A stretch of 64,000 bases of DNA from Paragordius varius. Its lineage: Eukaryota; Animalia; Nematomorpha. The DNA lies in the NCBI GenBank assembly GCA_964247055.1, contig OZ176054.1, positions 2,480,001 to 2,544,000 of the forward strand, in the 5' to 3' direction. A model generated the notes under the pieces. That model saw only the letters and a program-made list of their open reading frames with translations, was not told the DNA's origin and did not search any database. Position 1 is the first letter of the stretch, and the number at the start of each line of letters is the position of its first letter. Shown here in pieces: positions 18,931-53,911 of this stretch. Made by a program: the position numbers and the translations under genes.

Positions 18931-18962
<32 letters not shown>
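18931..18962. repeat. (AT)16 microsatellite
   Basis: Direct reading of the dinucleotide run. Confidence 0.95.
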
Positions 18963-18964
<2 letters not shown>

Positions 18965-20580
18965 GAAAAAATATTTTATTTGTAAAAACTTGAATAAAAT
19001 TAAAAAAATATATCGCCGATGTTATTTATGTTTTAAATGGCCATGATATTAAAGACAAAAGTTATATGTGCTTAATTAAACAAATAAAACTAAAAAATAT
19101 TGTTTCAATTATCTGAATTATTTTTTTGAATTGACTATTAGATAAAATTTTTAACAACAGCCAATAGTCGTAATACATATTTTATTAAATTGTGTACCAA
19201 AATATCATTGAAAATAAAATTTATATATGTTAGATATAATTTTTATGTCGTTGTCCTACTAAAATTTTCATTATCCAATTAATTGATGCTATTTTTGTTG
19301 AAAAAGCAAAACATCCGATATTACATAAAAATCCTGAGTTATATAACATTTTAATTGAATGTTATGGTTTTAAAACAGTTAACTAGCAAAGGCATCAAAC
19401 CATCTTATATATGTATATATTTTCATTATTTGTAAAAAAATGGCGTCTTAATCTTTTTGCGTGCGAAACAGAAACAAATTGCGCCTAAATAATCGGTTGC
19501 ATCACGATTAAATAAAAATTACATTTGATTTTACTTTGAAAATTATAAAACCGTATTTAACTCAGAAGAATCCAAAGTAAAATCCACACTGCAGGAATTT
19601 TTCAATGATGTATTTGACTGATTATTTTTGATTATGAGCATTATTGTTTTATTTTGCACAGAGCATAAGAGCGTTTTTGAGGTAAGCCATACACCTTTAG
19701 CATACAAGTCCTTTTAAGACATTTTATAAAAAAAAAGGTATATGATCATTTGAGTCTAATACATTCCAATGATTATCAATACAGGCCTGTTAGAATCTGA
19801 GAAAAATTAAACTTTTTTTTAGGTGCAAAAAATTAATCCAATTATATATCAATATAAATAATATATTTCTTCTGGAAATTTTGTAATCATTTTACACAGT
19901 TTACATAAAATATTTTGATTTAAAACATATACTGAAATTCTCAAGGTCGTCTTGGTTTTGGTGAGTCGTTTTAGTACATTATTAGCCTCGTGGTTATAGC
20001 TCCATATCGAAAAGTCGTAGAGTTAGCGCACATTATATTAAATAATTTATTGTTAAGGAACCCAAAATAATAAAATATGTATATACTATTAAATATATAA
20101 TTAATACACAAAACAATATCTATGGGGAAATTTTAATAATTAGGTGTGGACTCCGCGAAAGTCTTAAAAAATAGTCCGATAAAAATATTTTTTGATAGGA
20201 TGATGGCTCAGGATTATCAGGGTGCCTATAGTTTTGGATGTTACTACTGATTAGGAATTGCAATTTTTATGATAATTATTTCATTTAAAAAATGGTAATT
20301 AGCTCACTTTTTGCAAAAAGTTTTTATTAAGAGAAGCCATACTTTTCTTATCATTAAATATTTCCTAAACTATATTAACACCTCATTACCTGTTAATGTG
20401 GTTTTATACCCTAAAGAGATTTAAGATTTACGTATCAAAAGTATTGAGGTATTGGACCAAGTTTAAAATATGCTTTTTTTGGCTTTTGGGATCACAATTC
20501 AAAAAAAATTGAAATAAAATTTCCATCTCAAACCTTTTGGCCGCCATCTTTTTCTTAAGCTTTTTTATGTCACTAATATT

Positions 20581-20770: not shown

Positions 20771-21258
20771 AATAAAAATAAATATATGGTTTTTAATTGG
20801 TTAATAAAATAAATTTATTGATATTTTAAATGAAATGCATATTTAATATAGAATGATAAATTATAAAGGTCATAAATGGGAATTGTATTGACTAGTTAAT
20901 ATTTGCAATGGCTTGTTTAAACAATATTATTATAAAAAAATCTAAAAATATATGTATAACACTAAAGGTAAAAGGCGCAATAGAATTTACAATAATAGGT
21001 ACCTGTATGCATTAAAAAATATTCAAATAAAATATTTATTTACATCCGCATATTTGATAAAGTGGAATGCACATATATATTGTTTTTGAATAAAAATTAG
21101 AAAAATATGGTCAAAAAGAGTATTATTGCTATTGATTGAGTTATTGAGTCAATAATTTTTGATTTTTTAGTTAATTTTCATGATAATAATTCCGTGTAAA
21201 CCAAAAATAAGAGGGCGTCCGATAACAGTTGAGCCAGAAAATTGTGTTTACGGATTTT

Positions 21259-24200
21259 TTATTCTTTTTCTTTTCTGCGACAAGGTGGCAGAGCCCCCGT
21301 TGATAGAATCCATTTGTTGGCAACTAATAGATGTTGGTTCGTTTTTATTTATATATATATAATTTAAAAATATGATTGAATTTTTCGCTTGGCAATTAAA
21401 TAACCCAAAATCTTGAATTGAAACTTAATTACTTTTGATGGTTTATAAAGAAAACAAATACATAAAAAACTCAAAATTTTCATACTCGTGCACAATAAAA
21501 TAGCGTATAATAATTTTCCAATCATATTTTTTTTCAAAAAAAAAAATTAAAAAAAATACAATGTTTATGTATTTACCCCATTTGCTACCAGTCAGGACGG
21601 GACAGGCCGCATGCTTTGTGTTAACGTGACCAGCGCCAGAAGCCTTAAAATTGTACCAAAATACGGCAGAACCCTATAATAAATATTTGGATATAGTATT
21701 TTTACTTGATAAATTTTTTCTATTTACTTATATTTGTGAAATATAATCTAAGAACCATATTAAATTAAGTATGTAAATAAAACTTACGTGCTCAGTGTTT
21801 TTACTCTTGATTACATTTTTAAATAAATGCATACATTTATCAAAAGTTTGCTCCTAGTAGACTTGTTAAAATTTTAAAGGAGCATAACCTGAAAATTGCG
21901 AATTGAATTCATTAAATTGGAGGATCGAACGTCAAGTATATTCCATAAATATATAAGGTTTGCTAAAATTGTTTCACAAATTTGATACTTAGCTCCTTTC
22001 TAAAATAATTAAATCACTACATATATAATCCAAAACTTTAGAAAAAAGCATGAACGAGATAAATGGCAGACCCAAACTAGGTTCGAATTTCGCGATTAGT
22101 ATATTGATTGTATACATTTAACAGAAAAAAATTTAGTTGCAAAATCTCAAAAAATGCAAAAAAAACACCCGATAGTAAATCAAATACTAACTATGGTTGA
22201 ATGAAGAGTATAAAAAAGAAATTGCGGTTTTTCTATTAAGTAAATGTTATTGAAATAAATATGAGAATCTATGCATAATAATTGTAGCATATCGATAGCG
22301 CTATAGTTAATGGAGACATAGCTACGGTCCTGTGCTCAGGAGAAAACAATTTGTAAAAGTATTAATACGGCTCAACATATTTTTGTAAAGAGCACTTTTT
22401 CAAATATCATTGCATCATGTGTTATCCTTCCAGTTACTAAAAATTAATAAACCATCTACACTATCGGATACTTTTGGTTCATTTTTTATTATTTATTCGC
22501 AACTTAATACTTTTTCAGTTAAATCTAATATTATCGAATAAAATACCAATATCAAAATTCTTATCTTGTTTGAGTGTGCTAATTATCTCACTACTGGAAG
22601 AGTCTAGTAACGAAAATATTTTTTTATATCCAAAACTTGGGAAAACTTCTGTTTCATGTTTAATTAAATTTTTGCAGTTTCTTTTTTATGGCAAATTTCA
22701 CGTTTTATTCGCTTTAAAATTATATCTTCTCGCAATTGTGGGTGTAAGCTAAATATAACATGTCCAATAATATAATCTTGGAATCTAAAACTTAATTTCC
22801 TTTTACTTTTCTAAAATATTTGCCAAAACTTCTCTGGCTCTGCTATTGTTTTGCATGTTTTATCAATGTAATTCAAGAATGTAATAAAAAATAGCGTAAA
22901 GGAAGGGTATAAATTGGCGGAATAAGGAATGAATTAAAATAAAACAGAATTTACGCTTGTAAGCAATAGAAATCATATATTAAAATCCAAATATTGTACG
23001 GACCTATTGAGCAAATATTTCAATCGCCATACATCAATTAAATCTAAAAATATAGTTCAATAAAATGCGCATCTAGTTTTGCTAAACTTTGGATTATACA
23101 CACGTATAATTAAGGATATATCTATGTAAAGTAATTAAGTTAACTTAAATTTGGTCGAAAGATTGAAGCAATTTTACTCAAACTAACCTATATATTATTT
23201 GTTAAATGTACTTGACTTTCTATCCTCCAATTTACACAATTAAAAAACTCGCATTTTTTCAAGTTATGCCACACTTTGAAATTTTAAAAAACCTACTAGG
23301 AGTAGCCTTATGATAACTGAATGATATTTATTTAAAAATGTAAGCATATATAAAAAATCAATAATCATAAAGTATGGAAGTATTACTTTTAAGCTTACTC
23401 GAATAAAGGTTTCTAACACTGTAAAATGTTCTGACCTCTAATCCTTATTTCAAAACCGGATAAGTATTAAGATTTACCACCAAAAATTAATTCATTAACA
23501 TATGGACATTATAAAATTATTATGACACAATATTCTTTAACTTTTTAAGCCATACTTTTTATGTGAAAGATATTTAATTGATACATTTTCTGTATATATT
23601 TTAAAATTAAGTTTAAATTTAGAAAGTAGATAAGACTTGCTTACTTTTCTAGGTACTGAACGAATACCAGCCAAAGGAAAAACTGTTGCTCCACCGGCTA
23701 AAACATCACTTAACTAAGGAGTTCGTAAAGTAGGAATATAATAAAATAGGTTATTGTTTTTAAAAAAATGACATCGAGTTGTGCATATAAAGAGAAAATA
23801 TTGTTATTATATAAGCTAATTATTATAAAATTATTTATTATTAATCACGGATAATTATTAAAATCTTAATTAGATTTAATTACCACTCTACTTAACAATA
23901 TGATAAAGTTATTACTTTGAAAGCGTTTTTTTTTCAAAAAAAATCTAAAATAATTTTTTTCCTATGCCAAAAAAATATGCTAGATCAGGGGTGTCCAACA
24001 GGCGGCTTGCGTAAAATTTCGAAAACAAAATTTTATCCAATCTAAGTTAATTTGATTTTTTCAAAAAAAATTCTTTATTACATTTGTCCGAATTTTGGCA
24101 ATGAACAAGCAAAAATGTTAAAATAAATAATAATTTTTACAATGTTATATTAAAAGTTTGATAAAATATTCAATATAATTTGCGAATACGGCCTGTCAAT

Positions 24201-27200
24201 TTCTTTGATCTGAAAAAGCGGCCCGCGAAGCCATTTGTGTTGGACACCTCTGAAATATATTTTGATTTTTTTAGTACTTATATATATATATATAATTACT
24301 TTAAAAGATTTAGCCTATAAAAAATATATAAAACTAAAACTAATATCCCAATTTTATGTATAATAATAAATTTATTTCCAAAAATTATATTTTATTGCAT
24401 CCTAAAAGTTAAATCAAATTATGTTTTTCTTCAAACCCCCTTTGAAACATAAAACATTAGCAAGCCATACAAAAAACAAAACATACATAAAACATCCATG
24501 TGGCAATAGGTTGTTCAACCAAATTTCCATCAACATCATATTCCGGTTCCTAAATAAAAAAAAATAAAAGCGAAAATTAATTTTAGCGTTTTGAAAAAAA
24601 AAAGTTCTTAACATACCCCTGTGTTCGTTTTAATTATCATAATCAATTAAAAGCCACTCTTTTTGATATATTTGCAAACAAGATAAAAAAATGGTAAAAC
24701 ACCGTTTTTGCAGTAATAATGTCTTTGTAAATCTCACAAATTTTATAAAAGCGTAAGGCGCGGCTTAAAAAAACACTCTACATGGTATAATATGCTGGGA
24801 ATTAAACTTACGTTAAACATGAAGGTAGAGTTATATACAGTTTCCTTGGCGTTCATTAAAGGCATCTTTTTCTATACTGTGTATAAGATTGAGGTGTTTG
24901 GAAATTGACACGTTTATAAAAAAATATATAATAAATTAGAAAAATGTTTAATATACTTACTATATGGAGGGGTTAGTTTATAATTTTAGGTTAGTTAAGG
25001 AGCAAACAATAGATTGCTTTTTCATCAATGGTTAATTTTAATAAATAGATAATAGATTATATAAAATCATTAATATAAAAAATTATCTTAAGCTGTAATA
25101 ATATATACATATATGTATTATTCTAATAATATAAGGCATGCAGAATATATGTAAAATTTAGGCAAAGGCATGCAAAAACGGTGTTTCACCTTAAAAATTA
25201 AAAAGTAAAGATTAAGATAGTTTTAGTTATATTTACGAACTCTTGGGGTGTTAAAACAAATAAAATATTAGTATTGTCACATGCATAAAACTTTTTCAAA
25301 ATATGTAACATAACATAACAAATAATTATTTTTTGTATTTGTAAAATTTTTATTTATTAAATTAATGTCTTAAAAATATTTTCTATATATAAAAATATAT
25401 GAGATTAATAAACTTAAAATTGATTTTAATAGTATAAACATTAAACAGTTTTGATAAAAAAAACATACCCATGTAAAATCATAGTGTGGATCAAATTGTC
25501 CACCAATGCCATAATTTGCCACCTAAATAAAACAAATTCAATTAAAATTATTCTAAGTTAATAAAATAATTTTCTTATACAGTATTTACTCAAATTTCCT
25601 CATAATTCTATATATAGTTTCAATTTACTCATTAAATTATAGGAATAACCTCTATGGCTAAAATATCATTGTTTTTTAGATTAAACATAATATTTTTATA
25701 CCTGTAAAGGGTAATTTTGCACAGAAAGACCCGTTATAGCTAATATGCGTTTATTAATATCTTTGATAACTGTATGATCTTCCTCCCTAAGCCATGCACT
25801 AAAAAACATAAAAATACAGGAATTTTAGAGAGTCTAGATAGAAAATAAAAGTAAAATTACCAACACAAATGACTTCTATAGCCACATTTTTGTATAAAAG
25901 ATCTCCTCCGCCGCATTTGCAAATCATATATGGGATAATTAATAAATATAATATTTGATTCTATCTAAACATAAGACGCTGCAAAAACAACCAGTGTTTA
26001 TTTTAACGAGATTTTTCGGAGTTTATTGCCACGTCGGAAAAACTTATTCAGAAAATTTGTTTAGGAAAATCAAATTCACTTAGATCTCGTAGAATTTTTC
26101 GTGGGCTGCTTAAATATTTTTGAGGGCGCAAGCGGCCCGCGTGTTAAAAACCCCGGTTTTAGATTAAAGAACGAACTGCAATTCAAAAAGAAAGGTCAAT
26201 TACAAATTTTAAATTTTAAATAAAATTTGAGATAGTTGTATATGGGGTTAAGGGAATTTTTGCACATTGAATTTTTTATATTTAACGAATGGTGAATCAT
26301 ATGAATTATATAGAAATATTCAAGAAGCTAAAATATAGTTTAATATTATACTATTTAACTTGCGGCACATTTTTAACAAAAACTTTTTTTTTCAAATTTT
26401 TACAGAGTGATTATAATTATTATTATTAATAATAACAATAACCAATTTTTAAAGTCAATTTCTACTTTTTTTATAAACAAAATTTTATTGAAACAAAAAT
26501 TTTATATCGCAAAATAATTAGTTTGAGAAAAATATAATTAATCACTTTTTACTAATTCGGTGATCTGCAGTGCCATATTTTCGTGTATTTGGATCGAAAA
26601 CAGTAGATCGTTCAAGCTAAAATATTGATCATACACAAATATGGAATACATAACGTTTCACAATAATTTATATTTTTTATAAATAGATATCGATCCTTAT
26701 CTATCATAAGATATTCAATAAAATATACTTTTTCTCGTAAAAACTACCATTCTGAAAAATCAACTAATTTAACAAATATATATATATATATATATGGTAA
26801 ATAATTTCAAGTAATATCAATATATATATACCATTTTTCATGCAAAAACATAATTTTTTTAACCAAACGCACTATTTTTTCAAGCAAAGACAACATTATT
26901 TCCTAACGCAACATTTTAACAACATTTTTTCATCCAAGCGCAACATTTTTTCAAGCAAAAACAACAATTTTTTTACAAAAAAGTTTTTTTATTTCATGAC
27001 AATTTAATTAATTTTTAAGTTAATGTTATTAAATGTTAGCGTTGAATTATGATTTTATTGTTTTATCATTAATATTTGATGGTAAATTGATTGATTCCAA
27101 ACAGTTTAATTTCCCCCCATTAATTGCATTATTATTTATCTGTATTAATGATTCTTTTCTAAAACTTTAGTTTCACCTTATCAATCTATACTATTTGAGC

Positions 27201-27887
27201 TTCAAGAGTGGTGTCTTTAAAAATTTAAAGTTGGTCCTTACATTTTTTGCAGTTTGCATACAACCGTTATTTTTGTATGAAATCATCTTTTTTAAATTAG
27301 TATTTTTACATTCAAAATTAATATTTTCATAGCAAAAACAACCTTATTTTTTTTTAATTATCAATATATAAACTTATTAATGTTTTAATATTACGGATCC
27401 ATAACCCACAAAACCTAGATATTTTGATAATATAGTTAAAATTTTATAAAAACTAATATGGATATATGGTTCTTATGAAAAAAATGGTACTCACTTTAAT
27501 GTTTAGGTTAAAGTTAATAATGATAGGATGGATGAATACTTTATAAAAGTTAAAATCAAATTAAAATATTGAACCAATTTTAAATTTTCAAGAACAATCG
27601 CGCAATTTATTGATTAAGTGAAACTGGTGTAAAAGAAAGATAATATAAAATAATGTAATTTATGGGCAAAAAAATGTTGCAATTTACCATTAAATATTGA
27701 TGGTAAAACAATAAAAATCATAATTCTATGCTAAAATTAAATTATATTAACTTGAAATTTAATATGTCATAAAATATAAAAATGGTTTTGATTTTTTAAA
27801 AAAAGCGTTGTTTTTGCTTGAAAAATAGTTGCATTTGCTTAAAAAATAGTTGCGTTTGGTTGAAAAAAATGATGTTTTAAATTAAAA

Positions 27888-27940
<53 letters not shown>

Positions 27941-30900
27941 CCTAAATCATTTAAAAAATTTTTTGCAAAAATATATAGTAACCCTTGGAGAAGCAAGTTG
28001 TTTAACAACCATCATTTCATGATCATTGATGACATGGTGATAAAGATAAACTTTAGGATTAATTCCAATCTGTTCCTGCATAGCAGGAGCCAAAATTAAC
28101 AGAGGTGATTTGTGATTATTAACGTATTTGCATTTTAGTCTACGGGCTATGAGGGGATCCTTTCTTTCACAAATATAGTATAGTAGGGGTAGGTAGAAAG
28201 TAAAAAATAGAATAAATTATTCAAAAAAAAGTTAGTGCGTAGTTTAAAAATATGTCTTAATTTAACTATTACACGATGTGACCTATGGTATGTTAATTAA
28301 CGCATTTACATTTTAGACTACGAGCTCTGAGGGGACCCTTTGTTTCACAATAAATAAGGTACAAAATTTTGGTATTCAAAAAAATGGTTAAATACGCATA
28401 TATATATATATATATATATATAACACTGTTAAAAATATGAATTTGACCATTAGCAGAAGTGATCTATGCAATTTTATTGACGATTCTCCAACAAATAATG
28501 TAGTAAAAAATTGGTTAATTAACTATTATCATGAAAGAGTTTCTTTGTTTATTAACTATCTAAGCATAAATCTTTTGGCATACAACTTATGATTGGAAAT
28601 GTCACCTAGACACTCACTAAGATATATTATGATTTCTGAATTGATAAATTTTTATATCTAACAATTTGACAACAACAATATTCAAAAGCGAAAAAAATTC
28701 ACTAAACCTAAAAAAAAAATACAAAAAATTATTTTTTTAAACAAAACAATATAAAAACATAATTTAATTTTTAGAAAACTTACAAAATTTAATAGCCTAA
28801 ATACTCATATAATTAAATAAAAAAACCTTATATATATATTTATAACCATTTATAATTTATCCCACATTCCAAAAAAATTAATTGTATTGACAAAAACATA
28901 TACCATTCGAAAATCACCTCGGCACAAACTATGATAGTTCATAATTTCAGGGTTAGAATATTCGTCTTCTAATTTAGCATTTGTAGGTTCCCATTCATCG
29001 CCCTTTTTAACACCGGATCTTTCAAGTTCATCCAATTCTATTAGGAACGATTCTTTATTCGCTTGGGCTCGATCATGGAAAGGATCTAATAAATATATAA
29101 AAACATAAATAATATATATTTGTAAAACTAACTTTGGGTAGCTATTTTGACAGTTTTGTTCTAAACTTAAATAATAAATTGTCGAATATTTGTTATCTGC
29201 TAAAATTAATGTATATTTGAATGATAGTTTTAATATTTATGTTTTAAACTTAAATAATAAAAAGTCTCAAATTTTTATTATCTACTAAAATTAATTTATT
29301 GAATAATAGAAAACTGTGTATTATATTTACTTTTGGTTTTGGGTTTATTAATTTTTGCAAATTTATTTAGAACTATAAAAAAGAGTTTTTTGTGTTACAT
29401 TTGGGTGAAAAATTATTATAAATTATGGCAAAATCTTAATTGCATACTTAAAGCCAGTAATTCTTCAGTTTTCTTCATGGCGCCATTCACATCCCCTTGC
29501 TAACCAACAACACATTAAATATAATATAAATTCATATGTAAAGTTAGGAAAATTAAACATGAAAAATCATAAATATATATGGTTATATAAATTTCTTTAA
29601 AATGCAATTAATTTCTAATTAAAACTTTAAATTTATCAAAATTTGATAACTTTCTGCCATTTATAATATATAACTTTTACAGATTGCTTGGAATCATCAG
29701 ATTTTCGTGTTTTGTATAAATACCGTTAACACTAAATTCATATAATTTCAATTATTAATAATATAAAATATCGGATGAGTTTACATAATTTCTATTAACA
29801 ACATGAAAAAAATAATATGTAAACAAGTAATAATTATTATAATTAAACTGCAAATATACTTAATTAAAATATTAATTAAAATCAAAATCAACCTTATGCA
29901 TAACAAAAGGCACAAATATTTGTCAAATGTGATGGAACTTTGCATATATCACTCCAAAATTTTATATAATTCCATAATTTTATAAACACATCGCGCAATA
30001 TTAAATCAAATAATCTAACATGCAGAGATCGGAGAATTTTATATACAATCCAAACAAATTTTAATAATTTACCACCTTATATAGCGCAAAAGCTAAATAT
30101 TCCAAAATATCTTCAAGCAAAACACTTTTTTCCTCCTCAGATTCGTATCTGATTAAGGCTTCCTCCATCCAAATCTGCATGTGATAAAAATCATCGTTTA
30201 GATATGATTGTCGACCCAATTCAAAACATTGTTCAGCTATCGATAAAAAAAAATTTAAATTTTATAGACGACAAAAAAAAGTAAAATTAATCAGCAATAA
30301 AACCGCATATTAATCCTTAATTTTTTTAAACACCCTTAACTCAATTATTAAACATATTATGGAAATTATTTTTCTTAGACAATGAAGATGGCGTTTTCCG
30401 CTAATAAATTTATGATTTAACCTTAACTCAATTGTTGTTTTTTTACTATGAAAGATATACACGGTTGACGACCCAATTCAAAACATAAAATTAACAGACA
30501 AAACAATCTTCTTAAGGAATAAAAAAACCATATTTTTTGATCCTTAACTTTTTTTTTATTACTACCTGAAAAAAATTAATGAATACAGAACATATAGAAA
30601 GTAAAATATTAAAAAAATTCTGATATAATCAATTTTTCAAACGCTGCATTTTTTTAAATATAAATTACATGTGATTACAAATGTATGAAATATATAATTG
30701 AGTCGTGTGTGTTAACCATTTTACATTTCCAACATTCCTTTTTTTCTAGACAAGTTATATTAGCAATCATATTTTAAAATATTGTTTTTTGCATAAATAA
30801 TGTCCTTTTACTTTATAATTTGACTGTACATTTCAAGTTGGTCCTTGAAAAGTTCAAGTTGGTCCTTTAAATTTTTAAATTTTGATTTAACCATAATTTT

Positions 30901-33900
30901 TGCATTTATTTTTTTTCTATTATTTATTAATCTAATTTTCTTTATTTATGATATATTTATTCATTTAAAAATAAAAAATTTTATTGAAAAACCACTTTTT
31001 TGTTTCTTATTCATTCCGTGTTAAAATTTTACAAATCCAAAATTATTTTAAGAATTTAATAAAAATATACGGTTTCTCAAAGATTAAATGATATCTATTT
31101 AAAATTTATGTTAAATAATAGAAAATAGGTTAAAAAATAGATGTATTATTTACGATTTGATTGATAAAAGTTAAATACAAAATAAAAAATCAAACGACCA
31201 ACTTGAAGTGTTCACGGACCAACTTGAAATGTTCAAGAACCAACTTGAAATGTTCAAGGACCAACTTGAACTGTTCAAGGACCAACTTGAACTGTTCAAG
31301 GAAATTCTTGAAGTTCAAATGGTATATATTAAAAATCGTATTGGATCAATGTTTAAAAGATAATTTCTCACAAAAATTGAAAAAAGCTAAGTATAGTAAA
31401 AATTAATTATACGGAAAAAGAGACAAATATTTTTTTCAAAAGACAGCACCGCTTTTCTTAACATTTATTTTCCTATAAAAATTATTTAATAAAGATTGTA
31501 AAATATATAATTGATTGTGTTGCCAATATACATATCTATTCCGTACTTTGCAATTTCAAACAATGAGTTTTATTTAATACATGATTTACAAGGTTTGATT
31601 GTCTTTTATAAAAGAATATATCTCTTTATATTTTTACATTTTGTCCGAATAATTTCAACTTTTACTGTATACTCATTTTCCTATTTAAAAACTATAATAA
31701 TTTTGATTTCCCTTAAAAGGTAAAAAATTTGTATGTGGTAGCACTAAGATATAACTTTAAAATCAATATAAATTTAAACAGAAAAAACCCAGGCACCATT
31801 AAAAAACAACAAAAATTTTTAAAAATTGGTCAACTCATATTAGTGTAATCTTATATCTATTATACAAGTTATTAACCATCATCTATAAAAACCAGTCTAT
31901 AAAAATATAAATTTTTTTAGATCAGAAATTTATCAAAAAAACTTTTTTATTTATCTATAATTTAAACAAGCCAGAAATTTTTAAAAAAACGATAAAACAT
32001 AAAAAATATATCCAAATATTTGATCCAATTATTAAATTTTCATCTATTTATTATATACCATTTCCCAGTCTAAATAAACGTTTTCCCAGTCAATCGAAAC
32101 ATTTTCCCAATCAATCGAAACGTTTTCCCAGTCAATCGAAACGTTTTCCCAGTCAATCGAAACATTTTCCCAGTCAATCGAAACGTTTTCCCAGTCAATA
32201 GAAACATTTTCCCAGTCAATAATAACATTTTCCCAATCAATAAAAACGTTTTCCCAGTCAATAAAAACGGTTTTATTTTTGATGATAAATATCAAAACAA
32301 GAATATAAAAACACCTTTTAACCATTATTAGCGTAATATTAGGATATAATTTTTTATAAAAACACAATTATTGAATGACAATTTTTCCAAGTATATTCCT
32401 GTGCACAATCATTAATGATTTATTCTTTAAATATTATATTTTTGGAATTTGAGTTAAGATAATATTTTTTATTTTATCGACGTTTATATATGCGGCTAAC
32501 TTATAAAATCTATACTTACGGATTAAATAATAAAATTTATAAAAATATACCATTTTTATCACAAAGTCATTTAACACTTTATTGGATCTAAACATAAACT
32601 TTACGCCAAGTTTTTTTAATATTTATAATTTGATTCATAGGAGGCCCAACGCTGCCTTCTGATAATCTTTGTGCGGCCCGCGAAAAATTTGGAAAACCAT
32701 ATGCAAAAATATGCCCACAAAATCTTAGTAATAATCATATTTCTTACGTATTATTATGAATGGGTCTATTAAATTGGTAAAAAATTGTTATATTGTGTTT
32801 GTATTTTGCAGTCTTATAAAATTATGTGAATGCCCGTATATATTTCGAATAGAAAACCGTGTGCTTTTTGAGTTAAAGATGCGGCCCGCGAAAGCATTTA
32901 GTTGGACACCCTTGTTTTAGTAAAATATCCTTTTTATTAAATATTTTTAGCTCAAAAACATTTTTATCAAAAAAAATTTCGTTAAGATTTTTTTCCGACA
33001 GTATATTTATCGACAAACCGAAGATATTTAAAAACTATTCTGAAACGTTCCGCAAATATTAATGCGGACTATCGATAAAATAAAAAATATTATCTTAACT
33101 CAAATTCCAAAAATATAACATTTAAAGAATAAATCATTAATGATTGTGCACAGGAATATACTTGGAAAAATTGTCATTCAATTGTGTTTTTATAAAAAAT
33201 TATATCCTAATATTACGCTAATAATGGTTAAAAGGTGTTTTTATATTCTTGTTTTGATATTTATGATCAAAAATAAAACCGTTTTTATTGACTGGGAAAA
33301 CGTTTTTATTGATTGGGAAAATGTTTTTATTGACTGGGAAAATGTTTCTATTGACTGGGAAAACGTTTCGATTGACTGGGAAAATGTTTCGATTGACTGG
33401 GAAAACGTTTCGATTGACTGGGAAAACGTTTCGATTGATTGGGAAAATGTTTCGATTGACTGGGAAAACGTTTATTTAGACTGGGAAATGGTATAATTCG
33501 TGTTTTTGAAAATCACATCAAATTATTTTGGAACTAAATTGTAAAATCATTGATCAATATTTAAAACTATTAATTTATCTCCAAACTAAAAAAACTCGTT
33601 TCTAAAAATATTTTCATCAAGTTATAAAAAAAAATTTACCATTTAGACTAGGGGAAGTTTCAACGCCCGAAATATTGCCTTGAGCCATTTTGTTTGTGTC
33701 AACTTTGTACATATCTTGCAATCTAAAGAGTGCAACTGCAGCCCCATTCAAGTCCTGCTCGCCGGGCATAAATACATTGCTTGAAATTATATTGATGTAC
33801 GCTATATTATAAATTATTATGTGCACTTTGAAATAAAATTACATTGTGTTTGTTGAAAAGAGAGAAATTTAATGTTGGATAAAGGATATTCAATTACAAG

Positions 33901-36123
33901 CTCAACAACATACCTTTGACAAAGATATTTGTAAATATTATGAGTAAAGTAAGCCAATTGAAATATCCAACATATATATATATATTGAATTTGTTCTTAA
34001 ATAATTTTATTCCGAAGCGGTGATAATTGGTTATAATTTTATGGTTTAAATACCCATCCCTAATTAGAAAAAAAACATCCACAAATATTTTTGAGAAATC
34101 CTTCTCACAAATTTTAATGGATGTCTAATATTTTTTTAAATTCACACGTATACCATCAAATGTAAAAAAACCTATACTATTGTTTTTCTGGGGTAAAAGA
34201 AGTAGTACTAATATAATTTTGCTCAGTAACGATTATTTTTTCACAATAAAAAATATCCAAAATCAAACAATCATAATATTTCAAAAAAACTGTAACTGCC
34301 GATAATTATTCCGCAAAAACATTCTTTAGAAGCAAAACTATATGGGGTGAAACCGTTTTTTAACATAACTAAAATTGATATAAAAATTGTCAGAATATAT
34401 TATTATTATGAGTTATATAAAAAAAACATTTTGTCAATTACCCTTTGGCATTACATCAAAATTGTCAGAATATATTATTATTATATTATATGAGTTAAAC
34501 AGTACAATTTATATATATTATAAATCTGTAAAGTTTAGAGCATTTTTATTCAAAGAAATGTTATGTAAGGTTAAAAAAAGCTGCTAGGCGAAACTCATTG
34601 TAAATTTTAAAAGGCACGTATCATACTTATATATAGGTATCTTTTACAATGTATATGATACTTAACAATTCATAAATACACTTTTTTCGTCCCATTTTAC
34701 ATAATGTTGTAGTTTTATATCCCAAAGCCCGATTTCGTAAATAAATAAATTACAGTTTTAAAAGTTATTTTAGTTAAAATTTAATTATTAAACATAATTG
34801 TTATGAGGTTTTAGATAAAAAAAGCTTATATTTTTTATAGGTTTGTGACTTGTAGTGTTTAATTTTGGATAGTCCCTAAACCCGATTGAAACAAACATCT
34901 GATATTCAAATCAAAATATATCAAGTATTTGCTGGTAAAGTGTAGCCTTAAAGCTTTTAAAGCTTTAAAATAACCATATAATTATATGCCTGTTGCTTTA
35001 GCGATTCAAAAAAAATCAAAGAAAAAAATGGCGGTAAATTGGGGATAAAGATTTTACTTTTTTAAAAAAATTGTATATTGCGCCTAAAAGGCTAAAGAAA
35101 GAAAGCATTATATTATTTAATTCGGCTAATTACCTTAAATACTTTAAAGATATAAATTTAAATCGCTCTGGGATATAAAACTATCCCAAAAGGCAAAGGC
35201 GTATTAATTTTGCCTACTATTAAAAAACCAAATTAAAATATAAGATAATATATTAAATAACTTTCTGAAACATTGTTTCGCATGAAAGATTCTAGCGTTT
35301 TCCAATCCTTAGTGAGACTTTTTATGAGCAAATATGCATTGATGGGATTACTTATGTAATATTCGGCGTCCTCTTCCCCATACCTTTCCTCATTTTGTTT
35401 GATTAACCTAATTATAATAAAATTTTCAACAAAAATTCTAAAATTATCTTTACAAAAAAAACTTATGTGTCACATTTAAATTAAACGGTCGCACATTTTA
35501 AAATATAATCAAACGGTATGTTATAAAATATTTTTCAAAATCATTAATTTTATATTATATAAATCTACACTTTAGAAGAATTGATACATAAATTCTAAAC
35601 GATTATCTAATATTATAGCAATTTATTCTTTTTATTCATTTTTCATTAATTAAACCAGGAGATGATTTTTGAATTATCTGATTACAGTAAAATTAAAAAA
35701 GTTTATAAATCTTTTGAGAAAAAAATGCAAAATGACAGTAAAATTATTAATATATACGGAATAGTGAAAAAATGGTAAAACTATGTGTGGGTTCAAAAAG
35801 TAATTTTTAACTTATATATTATGCATTTTAATACACATAGAAGAATACCAAAAAACTCTATATAGAAAAATAGGATATTACCAAAGTATATTAACCATAA
35901 CATCACAAAAATAAGTTAATTAAGTAGTATACTCTTTGATTTTGGCTAATCTTTGTTCTTCCTCAGCTATATAGTCATTTAATAGGTTAATATATTCTTT
36001 TTTAAAATATAAAAGATTTTGGACATCTACCATAGACGAAAATACATCTTGAGAAAGAATGAGATCGATAGAAGATAAAATTAACACATTAAGTAAAAAG
36101 GCTAAGCAAAAATTTAAATTCAT
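21259..36123 (-). CDS. P4HA: Prolyl 4-hydroxylase alpha subunit, paralog B (528 aa, divergent catalytic-domain substrate contacts)
   Basis: 14 exons (high-low): 36123-35933, 35407-35262, 33801-33640, 30236-30076, 29499-29448, 29085-28904, 28159-27983, 26616-26546, 25798-25702, 25522-25469, 24549-24487, 23713-23645, 21673-21577, 21323-21259. Total 1587 nt, all GT-AG, no stops. Signal peptide, NPINAYLLIK, GAAVALFRLQDMY, TPR-like region, PHYD, HAACPV and GSKW are present. Confidence 0.93.
23986..24252. mobile_element. hAT-type MITE in P4HA-B intron
   Basis: TIRs CAGGGGTGTCCAAC ... GTTGGACACCTCTG with subterminal GCGGCCCGCG motif; TSD not preserved. Confidence 0.65.
24693..24712 (-). promoter_or_regulatory. 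Intronic element II (between alternative exons 11a and 11b) of predicted RNA duplex, P4HA-B
   Basis: RNA UGCAAAAACGGUGUUUUACC is complementary over 20 nt (one G-U) to element I at 25171-25190, and is conserved in paralog A. Confidence 0.7.
24812..24878 (-). pseudogene. P4HA: Decayed alternative exon 11a of P4HA-B
   Basis: AGTATAGAAAAAGATGCCTTTAATGAACGCCAAGGAAACTGTATA...ATGTTTAAC|GTAAG is homologous to 45930-45992. The acceptor CAG has become CAC, a net 4-nt insertion gives 67 nt with an in-frame TAA, and GNR has become GNC. Confidence 0.85.
25171..25190 (-). promoter_or_regulatory. Intronic element I (upstream of exon 11a) of predicted RNA duplex, P4HA-B
   Basis: RNA GGUGAAACACCGUUUUUGCA; lies in a roughly 80-nt block conserved with 45515-45595 of paralog A. 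Confidence 0.7.
26831..27890. mobile_element. Foldback-type non-autonomous element (family D), long TIRs with 21-bp subrepeats, (TA)n flanks
   Basis: TA|CCATTTTTCATGC start; units such as AAGCAAAAACAACAATTTTTT and their inverted copies near 27805-27870. Inverted homology extends roughly 250 bp inward. Contains a degenerate family-B element around 27190-27630. Confidence 0.7.
27891..27936. repeat. (TA)23 microsatellite
   Basis: Direct reading; abuts the right end of the foldback element. Confidence 0.95.
30829..31322. mobile_element. Foldback-type element family B (GGACCAACTTGAAATGTTCAA 21-bp arrays), left end eroded
   Basis: Inverted units at 30830-30870, about six direct units at 31196-31320, ending TTCAAATGG|TA. 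Internal sequence is shared with 58666-59269. Confidence 0.75.
31394..31667. mobile_element. TA-flanked MITE, CAGTAAAAATT family (pogo/Tc1-like)
   Basis: Left end (T)AGTAAAAATTAATTATACGG, right end TTTGTCCGAATAATTTCAACTTTTACTG|TA; homologous to 48770-49066. Confidence 0.6.
32058..33491. mobile_element. Young foldback-type element (family A) with about 420-bp near-perfect TIRs containing ten 21-bp repeats
   Basis: TA|CCATTTCCCAGTC ... GACTGGGAAATGG|TA. Arms 32058-32480 and 33072-33491 are almost identical inverted copies (one 3-nt indel). Unit GACTGGGAAAACGTTTCGATT explains the spurious (IDWENVS)n ORFs. Confidence 0.9.
32636..32914. mobile_element. hAT-type MITE nested in the spacer of the family-A foldback element
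   Basis: Two GCGGCCCGCGAAA motifs, right TIR GTTGGACACCCTTG, degenerate left TIR. Confidence 0.65.
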
Positions 36124-36588
36124 ATTTTAGCCCGGTTGAATGATGTTATGCAAATCAGCTATTTAAGAAAGAATGTCATAACACTTGGTTCCCACCATCT
36201 CAGTCCGATTCAAATTAGGGTTGTGAACCACAGGACTGTTTAATCACTTATTTTGTAAAAAATATGGAATATAGCTATTTAAAAGTTTGCACTTTATAAC
36301 AATGATGCCCCATAATAGGAAATAAAATTTGATACGACTTATTTATAGAGAAACCTGATCGTGAAAATTTAGTCAACATAACTAACTAATAAAATACCGC
36401 AAAAACACTTTTTACTGTTTTTATTAACACTATTAATTAACTTTTTTGTTCTAGTTTACCTTTTGGGGTAGTTTTATATCTTATAAATTTTATGACAAAT
36501 AACAGTGTTAAAGATTATTTTTGATAAAATTTAATTAAACATCTTTCTCATGCTTAATATAGAAATTCTATACGAAAGCTAATATTAA

Positions 36589-37150
36589 CACTTCGATTCA
36601 AATTGGGGTATCAAAATACCCCAGACTAAATTAGAGTTAGAATTTTTAAAAAACTACTGAATGAAACGGTCCTAATTTATGCTTCTATCCTAAAATTATA
36701 TAAATATGCCAAAACTTCTAAAAAAAATTTTGGTTTGAAAAGAAAGTTCCATGTCAAACTACTTCGACGCCATTTTAATTATACAAAATTTTTGTAAAAT
36801 ATCGTCTTCATTTGATTTAAAGGGTAAAAATAAAGCTAAATTTTTATTATCATATCTAACATTGGTAGAAATAGAAGGAGCAGTTTATTTTGTTTTATTT
36901 TTCAATATTACCATTGCATACATATCACGTCACTAAATTTTTACCTTTCGGTTTTAGCTTAAAATAAGTAATATCATGTATTTTTGAATAAACTTTTTTA
37001 TATATTTTGGTTCATTAATGTTTTAAGTGCAAGATTTTGTCATGGTTTCGATTCCTATATTTTTGAAGAATTTAGTTTTAAACAGGCCTGGGGTATTTAA
37101 CTACCCCAATTTAAATCGAAGTACTAAAATGAATGTGTTGTATCCAAGTG
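36589..37150. mobile_element. TTAA-flanked piggyBac-like MITE in the P4HA intergenic region
   Basis: TTAA|CACTTCGATTCAAATTGGGG ... CCCCAATTTAAATCGAAGT-(about 30 bp)-CCAAGTG|TTAA. The asymmetric terminal plus internal inverted repeats resemble piggyBac end organisation. Confidence 0.6.
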
Positions 37151-37478
37151 TTAATCAAGCGTCAGGTCAATATCCATTTTAATATAAAAGTTTTAATATA
37201 TAAAAGTCAATAATTAATTTATAGTGCATTTTATTTCTTATATTATTTACTTAATCACAAAAAAACCGTAATATATTTATTCTGATAGGGAAATGCAATA
37301 TGTTTTTGGTTTTGACAATTATGATATTACGAAATTTATTCACATTTTTGCAGTAATTTCAGAGAAGTGGTAAAATTTTACATTGTATTAAATTAATTTT
37401 TTTGGTAAAAACAAAACCTTTCCCAAAAAATATCCCTAAAAAATTATTAAGCAAAAGCTTAACAATATTTAAATTTAA

Positions 37479-37597
37479 CACTTCGATTCAAAATGGGGGA
37501 TCTAAATATCCCAGACTATTGAGTTCAGTATGTTTAAAAACTACCCAAGACCCAAATTTGAATCGAAGGACTAAAATTAGTGTGTTGTATCCAAGTG
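37479..37597. mobile_element. Internally deleted 119-bp copy of the same TTAA element
   Basis: TTAA|CACTTCGATTCAAAATGGGGG ... TGTGTTGTATCCAAGTG|TTAA. Confidence 0.6.
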
Positions 37598-38437
37598 TTA
37601 AACGATAATAAATATATGCTAAATTTAATACCAAAATTTTTTTTACAAAAAATAGATATCATATAAACTCTATCTATAAAATTTTGATGAAGCGAGTTTT
37701 ATCGTGTTTTGAAACACATGTAAGGGTATAAAAGTTTTCAAATATTTTAAAAATATTTTTTCCTATGATGCCACATATTTTTATTGTTATTTTATGAATA
37801 ACTAAAAACAATAACTTAACATAAATTTTGAGAAAAGCGAATTTTATAATCACAGTCACAGGTGATAAATATGTGCTTCATTAAATTATATAGAAAAATA
37901 GTGTTTTATTTTATTTTCAAGCGTTTTTATACGTTTGCATGATGCCTAATAGCATGAAGTACTCTTTACCAATTTTTCCAAAAATTATATTTTGTAAATA
38001 ATTCTCAGAAAAAACAAGCTTGACTTCAAAATTTAACATATAATTAAATATTTTTTCTCGCAATCTCGGTCTTTTCGCCTTTATTTAAACTGAATCTGCT
38101 TATTTTTAACGGATTAATTTTATGCAACCCGATTTCTGACGCAGTAAAATCTGCGACATATTAAAACTATACGCAGTATCTCGAATTCTAATGGATATCA
38201 GAATCATTTATTAGGGTTTCCTTCCGATTCTATGCACTGTTTTTATTTTTTTAAGCCAATGTATAAAATATTTGAACCAGAGAAAAATCAGAGATTATCG
38301 ATAATTTTGCTACACGTATTTAACAATATAATATAAAATTAAAAAAATAAGTCACTATATAAATATTTATAATTTACATCATTTCTCAATATTTTCAGTT
38401 GATTGCCATAACATCATTAATCAACCGAGAACAAAAT

Positions 38438-38854
38438 ATGGGTTTGAATTTTTATTCAGCCTTTTTTATTAATGTGATACTTTTATCCGCTATCAAGCTC
38501 ATCCTTTCCCAAGATGTATTTACATCTATGGCAGATGTCCAAAACCTTTTATATTCCAAAAAAGAATGCTTTAACCTAATAAATGACTATATCACTGATG
38601 AAGAGCAAAGATTAGCAAAAATCAAAGAGTATACTATTTATTTAATTAATTCTTTGAAATTTGGTTTTTATTAAGCAAAAATTTTTAACCAATACAAATT
38701 TATATTTTTTTCAGTATTTACCTATTATTACTTTCTCTTAATTACAGAGTAATTAATCGATCAAATATTTTGAAAGCGAAAGTTTGTTTTTTTTTCAATC
38801 AATTTTACAGTTATTTGATACTACATTTTATATAAAATCATATAATACATTGTA

Positions 38855-38887
<33 letters not shown>

Positions 38888-41800
38888 CATAAGATATATT
38901 CGACGTGATTGTATATGACCTAAATAAGAAATGAAGTTGTTTGATGCAATGAATATTTTACTTTTTAATTATTACATATATATTATAAAAACGGGTGTTT
39001 TATACCAATGAATAAATTATGTAATAAACATATTTTTACATTTGAAAAAAAAAATAAAATAAGGAAATATATTTTTTGTGGAAAAATTATGAGAATATAC
39101 GGAAGAATATTCTATATCTTTTTTACAAAAAAATAAAAAATGTTAAAACCACACGTGGGTTTCAGAATGTACTTCCTAACTTATATAGGCATATTTTTAA
39201 AAGTATATAAATATATATATTTTTTTTAATTAATAATATTAAAAGCTATGTAAAATCATTTTTTTGATTTAGTTGTTCATCATTAGCCGGGGTATGTCTA
39301 AAAATATAAAATATTTACACTAGATTTAATTTAATATTTTTTTCTTTTTTTGCATAATTTGGAATATGTATTATAAAATTTTGAGAGTAATTGATTAAAA
39401 ATTTACATTTTTTTTAAAATTTAATATTTTTTTAAAAAAAATTTAATATAAAGACTTTTCTAAAAAAATTTTTAAAGGTTCATCAAACAGAATGAAGAAA
39501 AGTATGGGGAAGAGGATGCCGAATATTACATAAGTAATCCCATCAATGCATATTTGCTCATAAAAAGTCTCACTAAGGATTGGAAAACGTTAGAATCTTT
39601 TATGCGAAACAATGTTTCAGAAAGTATACTATTTATATTTTAATTTTAAAAAATTCAGTTTTATTAAATAGATACCTTATGTTTTAAATGTTTGAATTTT
39701 TTTATGTAGTGTGGTGCTAAGTTAAATAACCTACATTGTAAATTATATACACATATAATACATTTTGTAATGAACGATGAGTTGAGTTTACTTTTGCCTG
39801 GCAGCCTTATTTTCGCCTTATGAACATTGAGATAACACATTTCTTTGAATAATAAATAAATGCTGCTTTTTAACTTTTTGCAGTTATAATTTAGTGCAAT
39901 TCAATATTTAAATTACGGCAATTTTGATGATTTTAATAATAACACTAACAATATTTCACGTTAATAAAGGTTTTTTTAGCTCTTCTATAAATTATTCCGA
40001 AAATTTTTTGGTTCCGGCTCCAATCTTTTTTTGGTAAAACGGTTTTTTGATTTTATTTTTTGATTATACAAATGGGTTAAATAGTTGAACAAACATCTAT
40101 GTATGCCACTTTTTTAAAAACAACAACAAAATACTCTCAATTTAAAATTAATTATTTTATGTTTTTCAACACTTGATGGTTTAATTTTTAAATAATATTT
40201 GCATACCTTATCATAGATTGAAAGGGTTTTTTCTAAGCAATACTTTTAGATATGATGAAGTTTTAATGACCTTTATACACTCTTTTCTCCTTCCTTCCAA
40301 AGGAGGTAAGCGTGTTAAAGTATTCCATTTATTTTTGTATGGAGGAATTATAAATTTTCTTGAATAGTGAGTGGATTGCCAGGTTTTACGAGGTCTACCT
40401 TTTTTAATTAGTTGAATATGATTGTATAAACTTTATTCAGTTTGTGTCTTGGGGACTCTGTGGATGTGACTCTAGCCTAATGTAAACGATATTCACGGAT
40501 AGCTGCATTAATTGGTTTAATTTTTAGGGTTTGATAGGGACAGAATTTGGATAAGAAATTATAGATGTTAGGATTATGTGCGAAAAGGATGGTGTTTAGT
40601 ATTTTCGGCTGACCCTTTTGCCTTGATTGGATGGACATTTTATTTAGTCATAGGCCACGTTAAAGTATGTCAAGCGGCCATAAAAGTTTTAGCCTTTGGA
40701 TATGTATTTGAACGGTTAAAATATAACGGTTTATGAATGCAGTCGTTTACGATCGTTCGCAGTCACGTAAGAACATTTGTAGATCCGTATGCTGATGCTA
40801 AACAAATATTTTGTTCCAATGGGCTATTATTGTCAATGTTATAAATGTCTTCTCATAAACATATATCATATCATATCATATCATCAAAAGACAAAATTAC
40901 AATTTTTCCTTTCAGTAAAAACCAATGAATGTAGTAGTTTTATTTCAAATTATACATATTATAATCATTATAATATAGCCTACATCAATAAAATTTCAAG
41001 CAATGTTTTTATGCCCGGAGAACAGGACTTAAATGGGGCTGCAGTTGCACTCTTTCGATTGCAAGATATGTACAAAGTTGACACAAACAAAATGGCTCAA
41101 GGCGATATTTCGGGCGTCAAAACTTCCCCTAGTCTAAATGGTAATTTTTTTATAATTTGATGAAATTTGGAAATAATTTGTATCATATATTGATAAATTT
41201 ATTTATAATTTTAATCTTTTTATTTAAATTTTATTGACAAGATTTTATTTATAGATAAATTGATAGTCAATAACTTGTAACAAGTATTGATGAATTTATT
41301 ATGATTAAATGATTTTTTTGCGATTTTAAAGACGAATTTTTAGTTTATAGAATTATTTGATAGTTGCGAATTTGTAAAAAATATATTAATTATGAGTTAT
41401 TTGTTTTAAGTGCCCTACTTTACAAGTATAGTAGTTTTTTAAAGAAAACTAAAATTTTATTTAAAAACTTAATTTCGGTTTTTAGCAATAAAATTATACC
41501 TTTAATTATTGGCCCAATAAACCTTTTTGATATAAAATAATTAAATAAATATTTACAATAGTCTATTAGTACGATCAGTTAATTTTCATTCTGATATTTT
41601 TTCATTAAATAAACAATATTTGTTAACTCTAATTTTTATATATAACTTGTCGTTTGGGAAAATAAGAAATAGATATATAAAATGGGTAAAACACCTAATT
41701 TTAGAATTTACAGACTAAATCAAATAGGTTATATAGAAACTATCATGGCTTAAAAATATGATTTTCTTAGTAAAAGAAATTTTGTCAAAAATTATATGGG

Positions 41801-44223: not shown

Positions 44224-44265
<42 letters not shown>

Positions 44266-47200: not shown

Positions 47201-47871
47201 ATTTTTTATATAAAATAATTTTATGTTCACTACATATATTTTACAATTTTTTAGAATGTATGTAGCATTTTTTAAACCTTTGATTTACCTTTCTAGGGTT
47301 CTGCCGTATTTTGGTACAATTTAAAGGCTTCTGGTGCTGGTGATTTTAACACAAGACATGCGGCATGTCCCGTCCTTGCTGGTAGCAAATGGGGTAAATT
47401 CATAAAATTTTATCATTTTTTTTGAGTTATTTAGTATAAGTATACACTAAAAAATATAATCAAAGAACTATACAAGAAACTTTTTAATATACTAATTTTT
47501 ACATTGCAGTACGTGGAAAAGGCGCCATATTTTAATAAAAAGCCACACCACTTTAACTAATTCTTCCAACCATATTTTTAGATTATTAGACTATAAGAGT
47601 AAAAATATTATATACGAGAGTTGTAAAATATGAATTCGAAATTTGTATGATAAGCGTTTCGGCTATATAAAATAATTTAAAAATATAGTTAATTTATTAA
47701 ATCTGCGGTTTTAAATAAAAAAAAACCGTGACTTTTATCTTACATTTTTACGCCTTATATTTTCAAATTTTACATTAAAAAATATAAAAACACCCAATAG
47801 TTGCCAACAAATGGATCCATGAAAGGGGTCAAGAATTTTTGAGACCTTGTCGCAGAAATCCTGATTTGTAA
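38438..47871 (+). CDS. P4HA: Prolyl 4-hydroxylase alpha subunit, paralog A (530 aa, canonical collagen-P4H-type motifs)
   Basis: Exons 38438-38628, 39478-39623, 40979-41140, 42376-42536, 42916-42967, 43170-43348, 44040-44216, 44452-44522, 44599-44698, 44879-44932, [45930-45992 or 46258-46320], 46858-46926, 47297-47393, 47801-47871. Total 1593 nt, all GT-AG and in phase. Motifs YRISKSAWL, AEDLQVANYGIGGHYDPHYD, GNRIAT, GGATVF, RHAACPVLAGSKWVANKWIHE. Confidence 0.96.
40250..40640 (-). mobile_element. Degenerate non-LTR retrotransposon (LINE) 3' fragment in P4HA-A intron 2 (boundaries approximate)
   Basis: Minus-strand reading IREYRLH*ARV...KKGRPRKTWQST resembles the RLRWxGH...GRPRKxW C-terminal motif of LINE ORF2; contains stops. 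Confidence 0.5.
44227..44262. repeat. (TA)18 microsatellite 10 nt from the exon 7 donor
   Basis: Direct reading. Confidence 0.95.
45115..45391. mobile_element. hAT (Buster-type) MITE
   Basis: TIRs CAAGGGTGTTTAAC / GTTGGACACCCTTG; 8-bp TSD TTCTAAAT / TTTTAAAT (7 of 8, central TA). Confidence 0.75.
45520..45536 (+). promoter_or_regulatory. Intronic element I of predicted RNA duplex around exon 11a, P4HA-A
   Basis: UAAAACACCGUUUUUGC pairs over 17 nt (one U-G) with 46121-46137; conserved in paralog B. Confidence 0.7.
45930..45992 (+). CDS. P4HA: P4HA-A alternative exon 11a (SIEKDAFNERQGNRIATFMFY)
   Basis: CAG acceptor, GTAAGT donor, 63 nt, phase 0-0, homologous to exon 11b. Confidence 0.9.
46121..46137 (+). 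promoter_or_regulatory. Intronic element II of predicted RNA duplex, P4HA-A
   Basis: GCGAAAACGGUGUUUUA, complementary to 45520-45536. Confidence 0.7.
46258..46320 (+). CDS. P4HA: P4HA-A alternative exon 11b (EPEYDNDGKLLDQRIATWMFY)
   Basis: TAG acceptor, GTATGT donor, 63 nt, phase 0-0; its orthologous exon is intact in paralog B (24549-24487). Confidence 0.9.

Positions 47872-48541: not shown

Positions 48542-48577
<36 letters not shown>

Positions 48578-53871: not shown

Positions 53872-53911
<40 letters not shown>

Follow-up and report, generated by a model that had tools for sequence, protein, structure and literature searches.

An intact, divergent prolyl 4-hydroxylase α-subunit paralog with replaced peptide-contact residues in the horsehair worm Paragordius varius

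A 64,000-nt stretch of the genome of the horsehair worm Paragordius varius (Nematomorpha; GenBank assembly GCA_964247055.1, contig OZ176054.1, positions 2,480,001 to 2,544,000 of the forward strand), hereafter the window, carries two head-to-head genes that encode collagen prolyl 4-hydroxylase (P4H) α-subunits (P4HA), hereafter called copies A and B. Copy B is a genuine P4HA paralog, intact and divergent, in which four of the seven residues known to contact the peptide substrate have been replaced and all of the iron and 2-oxoglutarate (2OG) ligands have been kept. Its divergence from A is asymmetric and uneven along the protein, and an intronic helix is conserved between the two genes. In the best reading of this pattern B is an α-subunit that is still competent for assembly and whose substrate contacts have degenerated, which the pattern fits better than it does a re-targeted enzyme or a decaying pseudogene; we put the chances that B is such a subunit, a pseudoenzyme-like partner or competitor, at about even.

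The copies were located by six-frame translation and DNA self-comparison, B on the minus strand (36123-21259) and A on the plus strand (38438-47871), and gene models were built from an exon-by-exon DNA alignment of A and B together with an explicit splice model. Copy B has 14 coding exons, GT-AG boundaries at 13 of 13 introns (26 canonical splice dinucleotides) and, with exon 11b, an open reading frame (ORF) of 528 amino acids. Copy A likewise has 14 coding exons and GT-AG at every intron, and encodes 530 amino acids with either exon 11a or exon 11b. The window is AT-rich (~25 % GC). The parts of the two genes are given below, with catalytic residues 93 to 245 numbered as in Chlamydomonas P4H-1 (Cr-P4H-1) and residues 311 to 529 as in P4HA2.

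35933-36123, minus strand: copy B exon 1; carries the start codon (36123) and encodes the signal peptide and the first part of the N-terminal dimerisation domain; weak P4Ha_N match; 75 % identical to A exon 1.
35262-35407, minus strand: copy B exon 2; dimerisation domain (PF08336, E = 5e-11, 42.9 bits); 2 non-synonymous differences from A in 48 codons.
33640-33801, minus strand: copy B exon 3; dimerisation domain (PF08336, E = 6e-10, 39.4 bits; above the gathering score, like exon 2); 3 of 54 residues differ from A.
30076-30236, minus strand: copy B exon 4; peptide-substrate-binding (PSB) TPR domain (PF23558 TPR_P4H, E = 2e-17, 63.7 bits).
29448-29499, minus strand: copy B exon 5; PSB domain, from the gene model.
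28904-29085, minus strand: copy B exon 6; last part of the PSB domain (RAQANKESF; Tyr230 equivalent W in A and S in B) and linker.
27983-28159, minus strand: copy B exon 7; extension at the N-terminus of the catalytic (CAT) domain, with the equivalents of Cys311 and Ile324, which contact protein disulfide isomerase (PDI); aligns to 7ZSC (E = 8e-6).
26546-26616, minus strand: copy B exon 8; substrate-binding hairpin loop, differing from A at 12 of 24 residues; Arg93 and Ser95 equivalents kept.
25702-25798, minus strand: copy B exon 9; ends in NYP-LQ; Glu127 equivalent lost, 3-nt deletion.
25469-25522, minus strand: copy B exon 10; encodes the H-x-D motif and the βI-βII catalytic loop; 2OG Tyr kept, Tyr140 equivalent Phe, conserved Arg after HYDF(S/T) replaced by Trp.
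24812-24878, minus strand: remnant of copy B exon 11a; acceptor AG changed to AC, CGT to TGT, and a 4-nt insertion giving an in-frame TAA.
24487-24549, minus strand: copy B exon 11b; βII-βIII loop; Arg161 equivalent Pro (CGT to CCT).
23645-23713, minus strand: copy B exon 12; GGATVFP, 2OG Thr kept.
21577-21673, minus strand: copy B exon 13; encodes the distal Fe His (KHAACP), the Cys504 equivalent and the 2OG Lys (GSKW); A's exon aligns to 7ZSC and 2JIG.
21259-21323, minus strand: copy B exon 14, KWILSTGALPPC; Trp243 equivalent kept, His245 equivalent Leu, Cys529 equivalent kept; stop codon at 21261-21259.
38438-47871, plus strand: copy A, the canonical comparator; exon 11a at 45930-45992 and exon 11b at 46258-46320; all conserved residues present.
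36124-38437, no strand: inter-gene region, 2.3 kb between the divergent start codons, with the presumed promoters; A/B similarity reaches ~60 nt upstream of both ATGs.

No stop codon, frameshift or lost splice site was found in the 13 constitutive exons of B or at their splice sites, the only broken part being alternative exon 11a. The coding indels of B amount to three events, in exons 9 and 14, and all are net in-frame. The A and B proteins are 82 % identical, at a synonymous divergence (dS) of 0.36.

An earlier note on this DNA, made from the sequence alone, had described B as an intact 528-aa ORF with the motifs PHYD, KHAACP and GSKW, and the gene model agrees. It had placed the gene at 21259-29085, which is exact for exons 6 to 14 and leaves out exons 1 to 5, the gene starting at 36123, although its count for exon 3 shows that it had these exons in view. 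The replacements that it listed recur in the A/B alignment: AEDLQ to NYP-LQ with a 1-aa deletion (a clean 3-nt deletion in the DNA), GHYDPH to GQFDPH, QRIAT to QPIAT and, in the peptide-binding domain, RAQGNKEWY to RAQANKESF. Its counts of changed residues in exon 8 (12 of 24) and exon 3 (3 of 54) were also reproduced. The change of KWIHERGQEF to KWILSTGA(L) is real as well, although it did not arise by point substitutions: HERGQEFLR became LSTGALP in exon 14 through a +1 insertion followed by a -7 deletion, which brings the frame back just before the Cys529 equivalent. The note had further given Glu127, Tyr140, Arg161 and His245 of Cr-P4H-1 as the positions replaced, with Arg93 and Trp243 kept, and alignment to 2JIG/3GZE confirmed this.

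Searches of B were made exon by exon, and the residue mapping was carried over through the Gordionus orthologue P0151, which is 73 % identical to A, aligns unambiguously to both A and B, and was itself aligned to 2JIG/3GZE (chain index +29). A PDB search with B exon 6 alone gave no match, and the PSB mapping (Tyr230 equivalent) was taken from P0151. Three of the seven peptide-contact residues of Cr-P4H-1 are kept in B, namely Arg93 and Ser95 (YRIS in A) and Trp243 (KWIH in A). The other four are replaced: at the position of Glu127 (TAE in A) B has VQNYPLQ, with Pro or a gap and no acidic residue, Tyr140 (GHY in A) is Phe, Arg161 ((Q/N)RIAT in A) is Pro, and His245 of KWIH is Leu. By contrast with these, all six Fe and 2OG ligands are kept, that is, His143 and Asp145 of the H-x-D motif (PHYD), the distal Fe His227 (RHAACP in A, KHAACP in B), Tyr134 (VANYG), the Thr of GGATVF and Lys237 (GSKW). 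In P4HA2 2OG is bound by Tyr421, Thr467 and Lys511, and Tyr427, which corresponds to Tyr140, is highly conserved and contacts the proline to be hydroxylated; the active-site loops are the hairpin, βI-βII and βII-βIII loops (PMC9676403). The Glu127-Arg161 pair positions the substrate, and the R161Q and R161D variants were computed to be inactive (PMC5684110).

A and B were aligned with 114 full-length homologues, which were found using the Gordionus protein P0002 and come from arthropods, molluscs and other animals; conservation among them is 100 % in the Glu, Tyr and Arg columns and 98 % in the His column. Human P4HA1 is said to have an 'additional critical His' after the 2OG lysine, reportedly described by Myllyharju and Kivirikko in 1997. 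B alone departs from the 98-100 % conserved columns at E410P, Y423F, R431W, R445P, H514L and E515S; over all 122 columns that are at least 98 % conserved it departs at 25 and A at 9, nearly all of the latter common to B. In distant cluster representatives (30-45 % identity) H-to-R/K/Q and Y-to-F/L changes occur at the same positions, with the Arg almost always kept. Divergent P4HA-like proteins of that sort are therefore not new, as single changes of the kind occur in them; copy B has all four replacements together in a protein that is conservative elsewhere. A collagen P4H isoenzyme of the ordinary kind, fully active and tolerant of the replaced residues, would share B's domain organisation and cofactor ligands, which are those of a collagen P4H α-subunit. 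That B is such an enzyme is nevertheless very improbable, given the conservation of the four columns in the homologues, the direct substrate contacts that the literature assigns to the replaced residues, and the retention of every one of them in sister copy A.

The divergence between the copies lies almost wholly on one side. In maximum-likelihood trees the B branch is ~10 times as long as A's for the whole protein (0.187 vs 0.019), and the corresponding values are 0.298 vs 0.036 for the catalytic half and 0.143 vs 0.007 for the N half; ~90 % of the protein divergence between A and B is on B's branch. The pairwise ratio of non-synonymous to synonymous divergence (dN/dS, Nei-Gojobori) is 0.27. 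For the B branch this ratio (ω) was obtained on the assumption that ~90 % of the non-synonymous changes, but only half of the synonymous ones, fell on B, an approximation rather than a codon-model fit. It was ~0.58 overall (p = 0.002 vs 1), 0.27 in the dimerisation domain (p = 0.002) and 0.30 in the linker and CAT N-terminal extension (p = 0.007), and did not differ significantly from 1 in the PSB domain (0.68), the CAT core (0.59) or the five substrate-facing segments (1.04). None of these approximate regional values gave a sign of ω above 1 on B's branch. Within the catalytic domain 34 of 73 residues have changed in the substrate-facing segments, vs 15 of 103 elsewhere (p = 6e-6), and four of those 15 are in the unconserved C-terminal tail. 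The excess of ω over 1 at the substrate-contact sites that the earlier note would have counted as support did not appear, the approximate loop value being ~1.0; nor is ω uniformly near 1, which it would have counted as refutation, since the divergence is strongly uneven. A loop ω that reaches ~1.0 and does not exceed it points to relaxed constraint and not to adaptive remodelling.

In another reading B would be an active Fe(II)/2OG dioxygenase whose remodelled loops take a new substrate, such as a cuticle protein of another class or a different sequence context. All Fe and 2OG ligands are kept, the double-stranded β-helix core has few changes and none at a cofactor ligand, the replacements are on exactly the elements that set substrate choice in the P4H family, and divergent P4HA-like proteins that carry H-to-R or Y-to-F at the corresponding positions are found in other animals. 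We nonetheless regard a new substrate as rather unlikely, as the loop ω shows no excess over neutrality, the Arg161 equivalent, almost always kept even in divergent relatives, is Pro in B, a frameshifted stretch, and not a set of point changes, took the place of the His245 strand, and the PSB domain is relaxed too (ω 0.68). The retention of the six ligands is statistically unremarkable, with a probability that we estimate at ~20 % given B's hit rate at conserved columns.

Neutral decay was simulated on A's coding sequence with intron base composition, indels and the 26 splice dinucleotides (all intact in B) being outside the model. At ~100 amino-acid changes the simulated sequences had a mean of 8.4 premature stops and 0 of 4000 were stop-free; for the catalytic half alone the probability of no stop was 0.02-0.035. 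Neutral decay of B is unlikely.

Both copies carry an alternative exon pair, 11a and 11b, of 63 nt each in phase 0. Exon 11a of B is broken in its ancestral frame, the acceptor AG having become AC, an Arg codon CGT having become TGT and a 4-nt insertion having produced an in-frame TAA, and it provides an example of unconstrained sequence within copy B. Because 11a is broken, the QPIAT of exon 11b sits in B's sole usable ancestral-type exon. In both copies exon 11a is bracketed by an intronic helix, whose arms in A are at 45516-45536 and 46121-46141 and in B as follows.

25171-25190, minus strand: upstream arm of the B intronic helix; 20 nt, 95 % complementary to 24693-24712; 1 nt off A's arm.
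24693-24712, minus strand: downstream arm of the B intronic helix; 2 nt off A's arm at 46121-46141.

The arms thus differ by only 1 and 2 nt between A and B, whereas the surrounding intron is only 65-73 % identical. As the arms have been kept inside a diverged intron, the conserved helix suggests that the B pre-mRNA is still shaped by selection, and its role in B is plausibly the skipping of the dead exon 11a.

A cryptic in-frame version of exon 11a, 60 nt long and bounded by AG and GT, was also observed in B at 24871-24812 (minus strand) and would encode KKMPLMNAKETVYNSTFMFN. Its frame is restored by a 7-nt downstream shift of the acceptor together with the 4-nt insertion. The chance of an open frame of this length in the local base composition is ~15 % by our estimate.

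Runs deposited under the same species label include four that are DNA-like, covering both introns and exons of B over 21200-27100; the others are small and were guessed to be RNA. In a second individual, X4, which is ~5 % divergent, all of the differences listed at 21386-23391 (at least 40) are intronic, with ~3 expected in exons, and little weight was given to this result.

A pseudogene that is not expressed, or was silenced so recently that its frame is still unharmed, would account for the want of RNA support in two small guessed-RNA runs, for the B-branch ω of ~0.58 overall and ~1 in the substrate loops, for the already broken exon 11a, for the indels in exons 9 and 14, and for the loss of four otherwise invariant functional residues. 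It would have to be reconciled with a frame and splice sites that are all intact despite ~100 B-specific amino-acid changes (fewer than 1 in 4000 in the neutral simulation), with ω of ~0.3, significantly below 1, in the N domain and CAT N-terminal extension, with indels that are all net in-frame, with the conserved arms of the intronic helix and, weakly, with the intronic position of all of the at least 40 listed X4 differences. On balance we hold a pseudogene to be unlikely.

The modules that would carry assembly have fared differently from the substrate loops. In P4HA2 the contacts between CAT and PDI lie around Cys311, Ile324 and Cys529, and Cys294 and Cys504 form an intrasubunit bridge (PMC9676403). 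By the 7ZSC alignment of P0151 the equivalents of Cys294, Cys311, Cys504 and Cys529 are all kept in B (SLCRGD, LKCKY, HAACP and PPC), and the Ile324 position is Leu in both A and B. The earlier note had offered two readings, a neofunctionalised dioxygenase or an impaired competitor for PDI; with the dimerisation domain and CAT N-terminal extension constrained, the cysteines kept and the loops at ω ~1.0, the evidence favours the second kind.

We propose that B would be a lineage-specific inverted duplicate of the horsehair worm collagen P4H α-subunit gene, which selection would keep as an open, correctly spliceable gene. Constraint would persist on the modules required for folding and assembly of the α-subunit and would have been lifted on all the parts that touch the peptide; in the catalytic domain these are the hairpin loop, the Glu127-Arg161 pair, the switch at Tyr140 and the strand with His245, and in the PSB groove its last aromatic residue. 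We infer assembly competence, loss of activity and expression of B, the product being most likely an α-subunit that would still dimerise, with itself or with A, and would still bind PDI, without canonical X-Pro-Gly hydroxylation. More tentatively, and with some doubt, B could act as a non-catalytic partner that pairs with A or sequesters PDI, giving asymmetric tetramers that tune the hydroxylation of cuticle collagen. The cofactor pocket would in that case be kept for stability or for uncoupled 2OG turnover.

Several points weigh against B as an assembly-competent subunit devoid of canonical hydroxylation. In the two small runs guessed to be RNA no contig covered B exons 8-14 (the search covering 21200-27100, with no control on copy A); this gap is not evidence of silence. 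The B-branch ω values are approximate, as described above, and the loop segments, which are elements named in the literature, were chosen after the data had been seen. The six kept ligands, having a ~20 % probability of chance retention, argue neither for nor against catalysis. Finally, assembly of B with PDI or with A is predicted from conserved residues alone.

In the protein collection the nearest relatives come from a pair of neighbouring genes in Gordionus sp. m RMFG-2023, whose accessions are consecutive. For the canonical Gordionus gene (P0151, P0272-P0275) both 11a-type and 11b-type isoforms are annotated, whereas the fast gene (P0002, P0270, P0271) has 11b-type models only and a branch of 0.199 vs 0.033. 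Model P0002 runs into an intron at its C-terminus, and isoform P0274 omits both alternative exons. Trees of the whole protein and of each half group A with B (99-100 %) and the two Gordionus genes with each other (67-91 %), and site patterns favour this species-wise grouping by 71:4:2, spread over the whole length. The trees and site patterns together indicate that the duplications were independent, or that full homogenisation of the copies preceded their present divergence (dS 0.36). That B is an orthologue of the fast Gordionus copy was rejected on the trees and on the site patterns (71 vs 4 and 2). The sites hit in both fast copies coincide 17 times vs 7.6 expected (p = 4e-4), which among-site rate variation can explain. 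Recent gene conversion as the cause of B's intactness was not supported, no exon having a dS near 0 (range 0.20-0.69). A word search with exon 7 for B-like fragments in other assemblies gave no candidates.

Some further features of the region were recorded. A 54-nt fragment at 28296-28350 (minus strand, B intron 6), ~140 nt upstream of the true exon 7, resembles the 5' end of that exon (GPLRARSLKCKCVN vs DPLIARRLKCKYVN) and looks like a partial exon duplication. B intron 3 holds a ~400-nt inverted repeat (32047-32449 and 33103-33493) with arms 96-98 % identical when translated and with tandem 21-nt units, which may be a foldback-type mobile element inserted there. In both copies the exon 7 donor has a (TA)n microsatellite a short way downstream (27880-27940 in B, 44227-44262 in A), and further (TA)n tracts are at 18931-18981, 38840-38887, 48544-48577 and 53860-53914. 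The region upstream of B exon 4 (30825-30987 and 31161-31403) shares with 58583-59437 a repeated element, 86 % identical over 165 nt, in which there are short tandem units.

Lineage-specific expansions of P4HA are common in moulting animals and mostly uncharacterised, and the young A/B pair offers a clean natural experiment on which residues serve catalysis and which serve tetramer assembly. If B is non-catalytic it would be a documented pseudoenzyme in the P4HA family, and if it is active it would represent a change of substrate specificity; either outcome would be incremental for the field and not surprising.

Compared with human P4HA1-3 (7ZSC, the catalytic domain with PDI; N and PSB domains in 4BT8 and 1TJC), B has the same order of N domain, PSB domain, linker and CAT domain, a signal peptide, the cysteines that contact PDI and the ligands of Fe and 2OG, and alternative exons encode the βII-βIII loop in P4HA2 as they do in copies A and B. 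Unlike the human proteins it is without the conserved Glu, Tyr, Arg and post-Lys His and the HERGQEF motif, and it has one usable ancestral-type exon for the βII-βIII loop. The Cr-P4H-1 peptide complex (3GZE) served as the structural template for the catalytic core; Cr-P4H-1 differs in being a monomer without N and PSB domains or PDI. The PHY-1 and PHY-2 proteins of the nematodes Caenorhabditis elegans and Brugia malayi are likewise ecdysozoan, lineage-specific α-subunit paralogs, with various assembly combinations. In C. elegans PHY-1 and PHY-2 form a mixed tetramer. The homotetramer of Bma-PHY-2 was reported to be enzymatically inactive (PMC3548485). Drosophila has 26 P4Hα-related genes, a large and poorly characterised expansion in which the N-PSB-L-CAT organisation is conserved (PMC12340787). 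Divergent P4HA-like proteins of this kind are 30-45 % identical to the canonical ones, whereas B is 82 % identical to its sister, with its changes concentrated on the substrate-binding elements. The second Gordionus paralog resembles B in adjoining a canonical gene, in evolving fast and in being of the 11b type only, but it keeps Glu, Tyr, Arg, Trp and His, of which B does not keep Glu, Tyr, Arg and His. As a kind, ecdysozoan P4HA paralogs that are specific to one lineage and altered in active-site residues are thus not new, and the interesting part of copy B is the clean split between conserved and relaxed modules.

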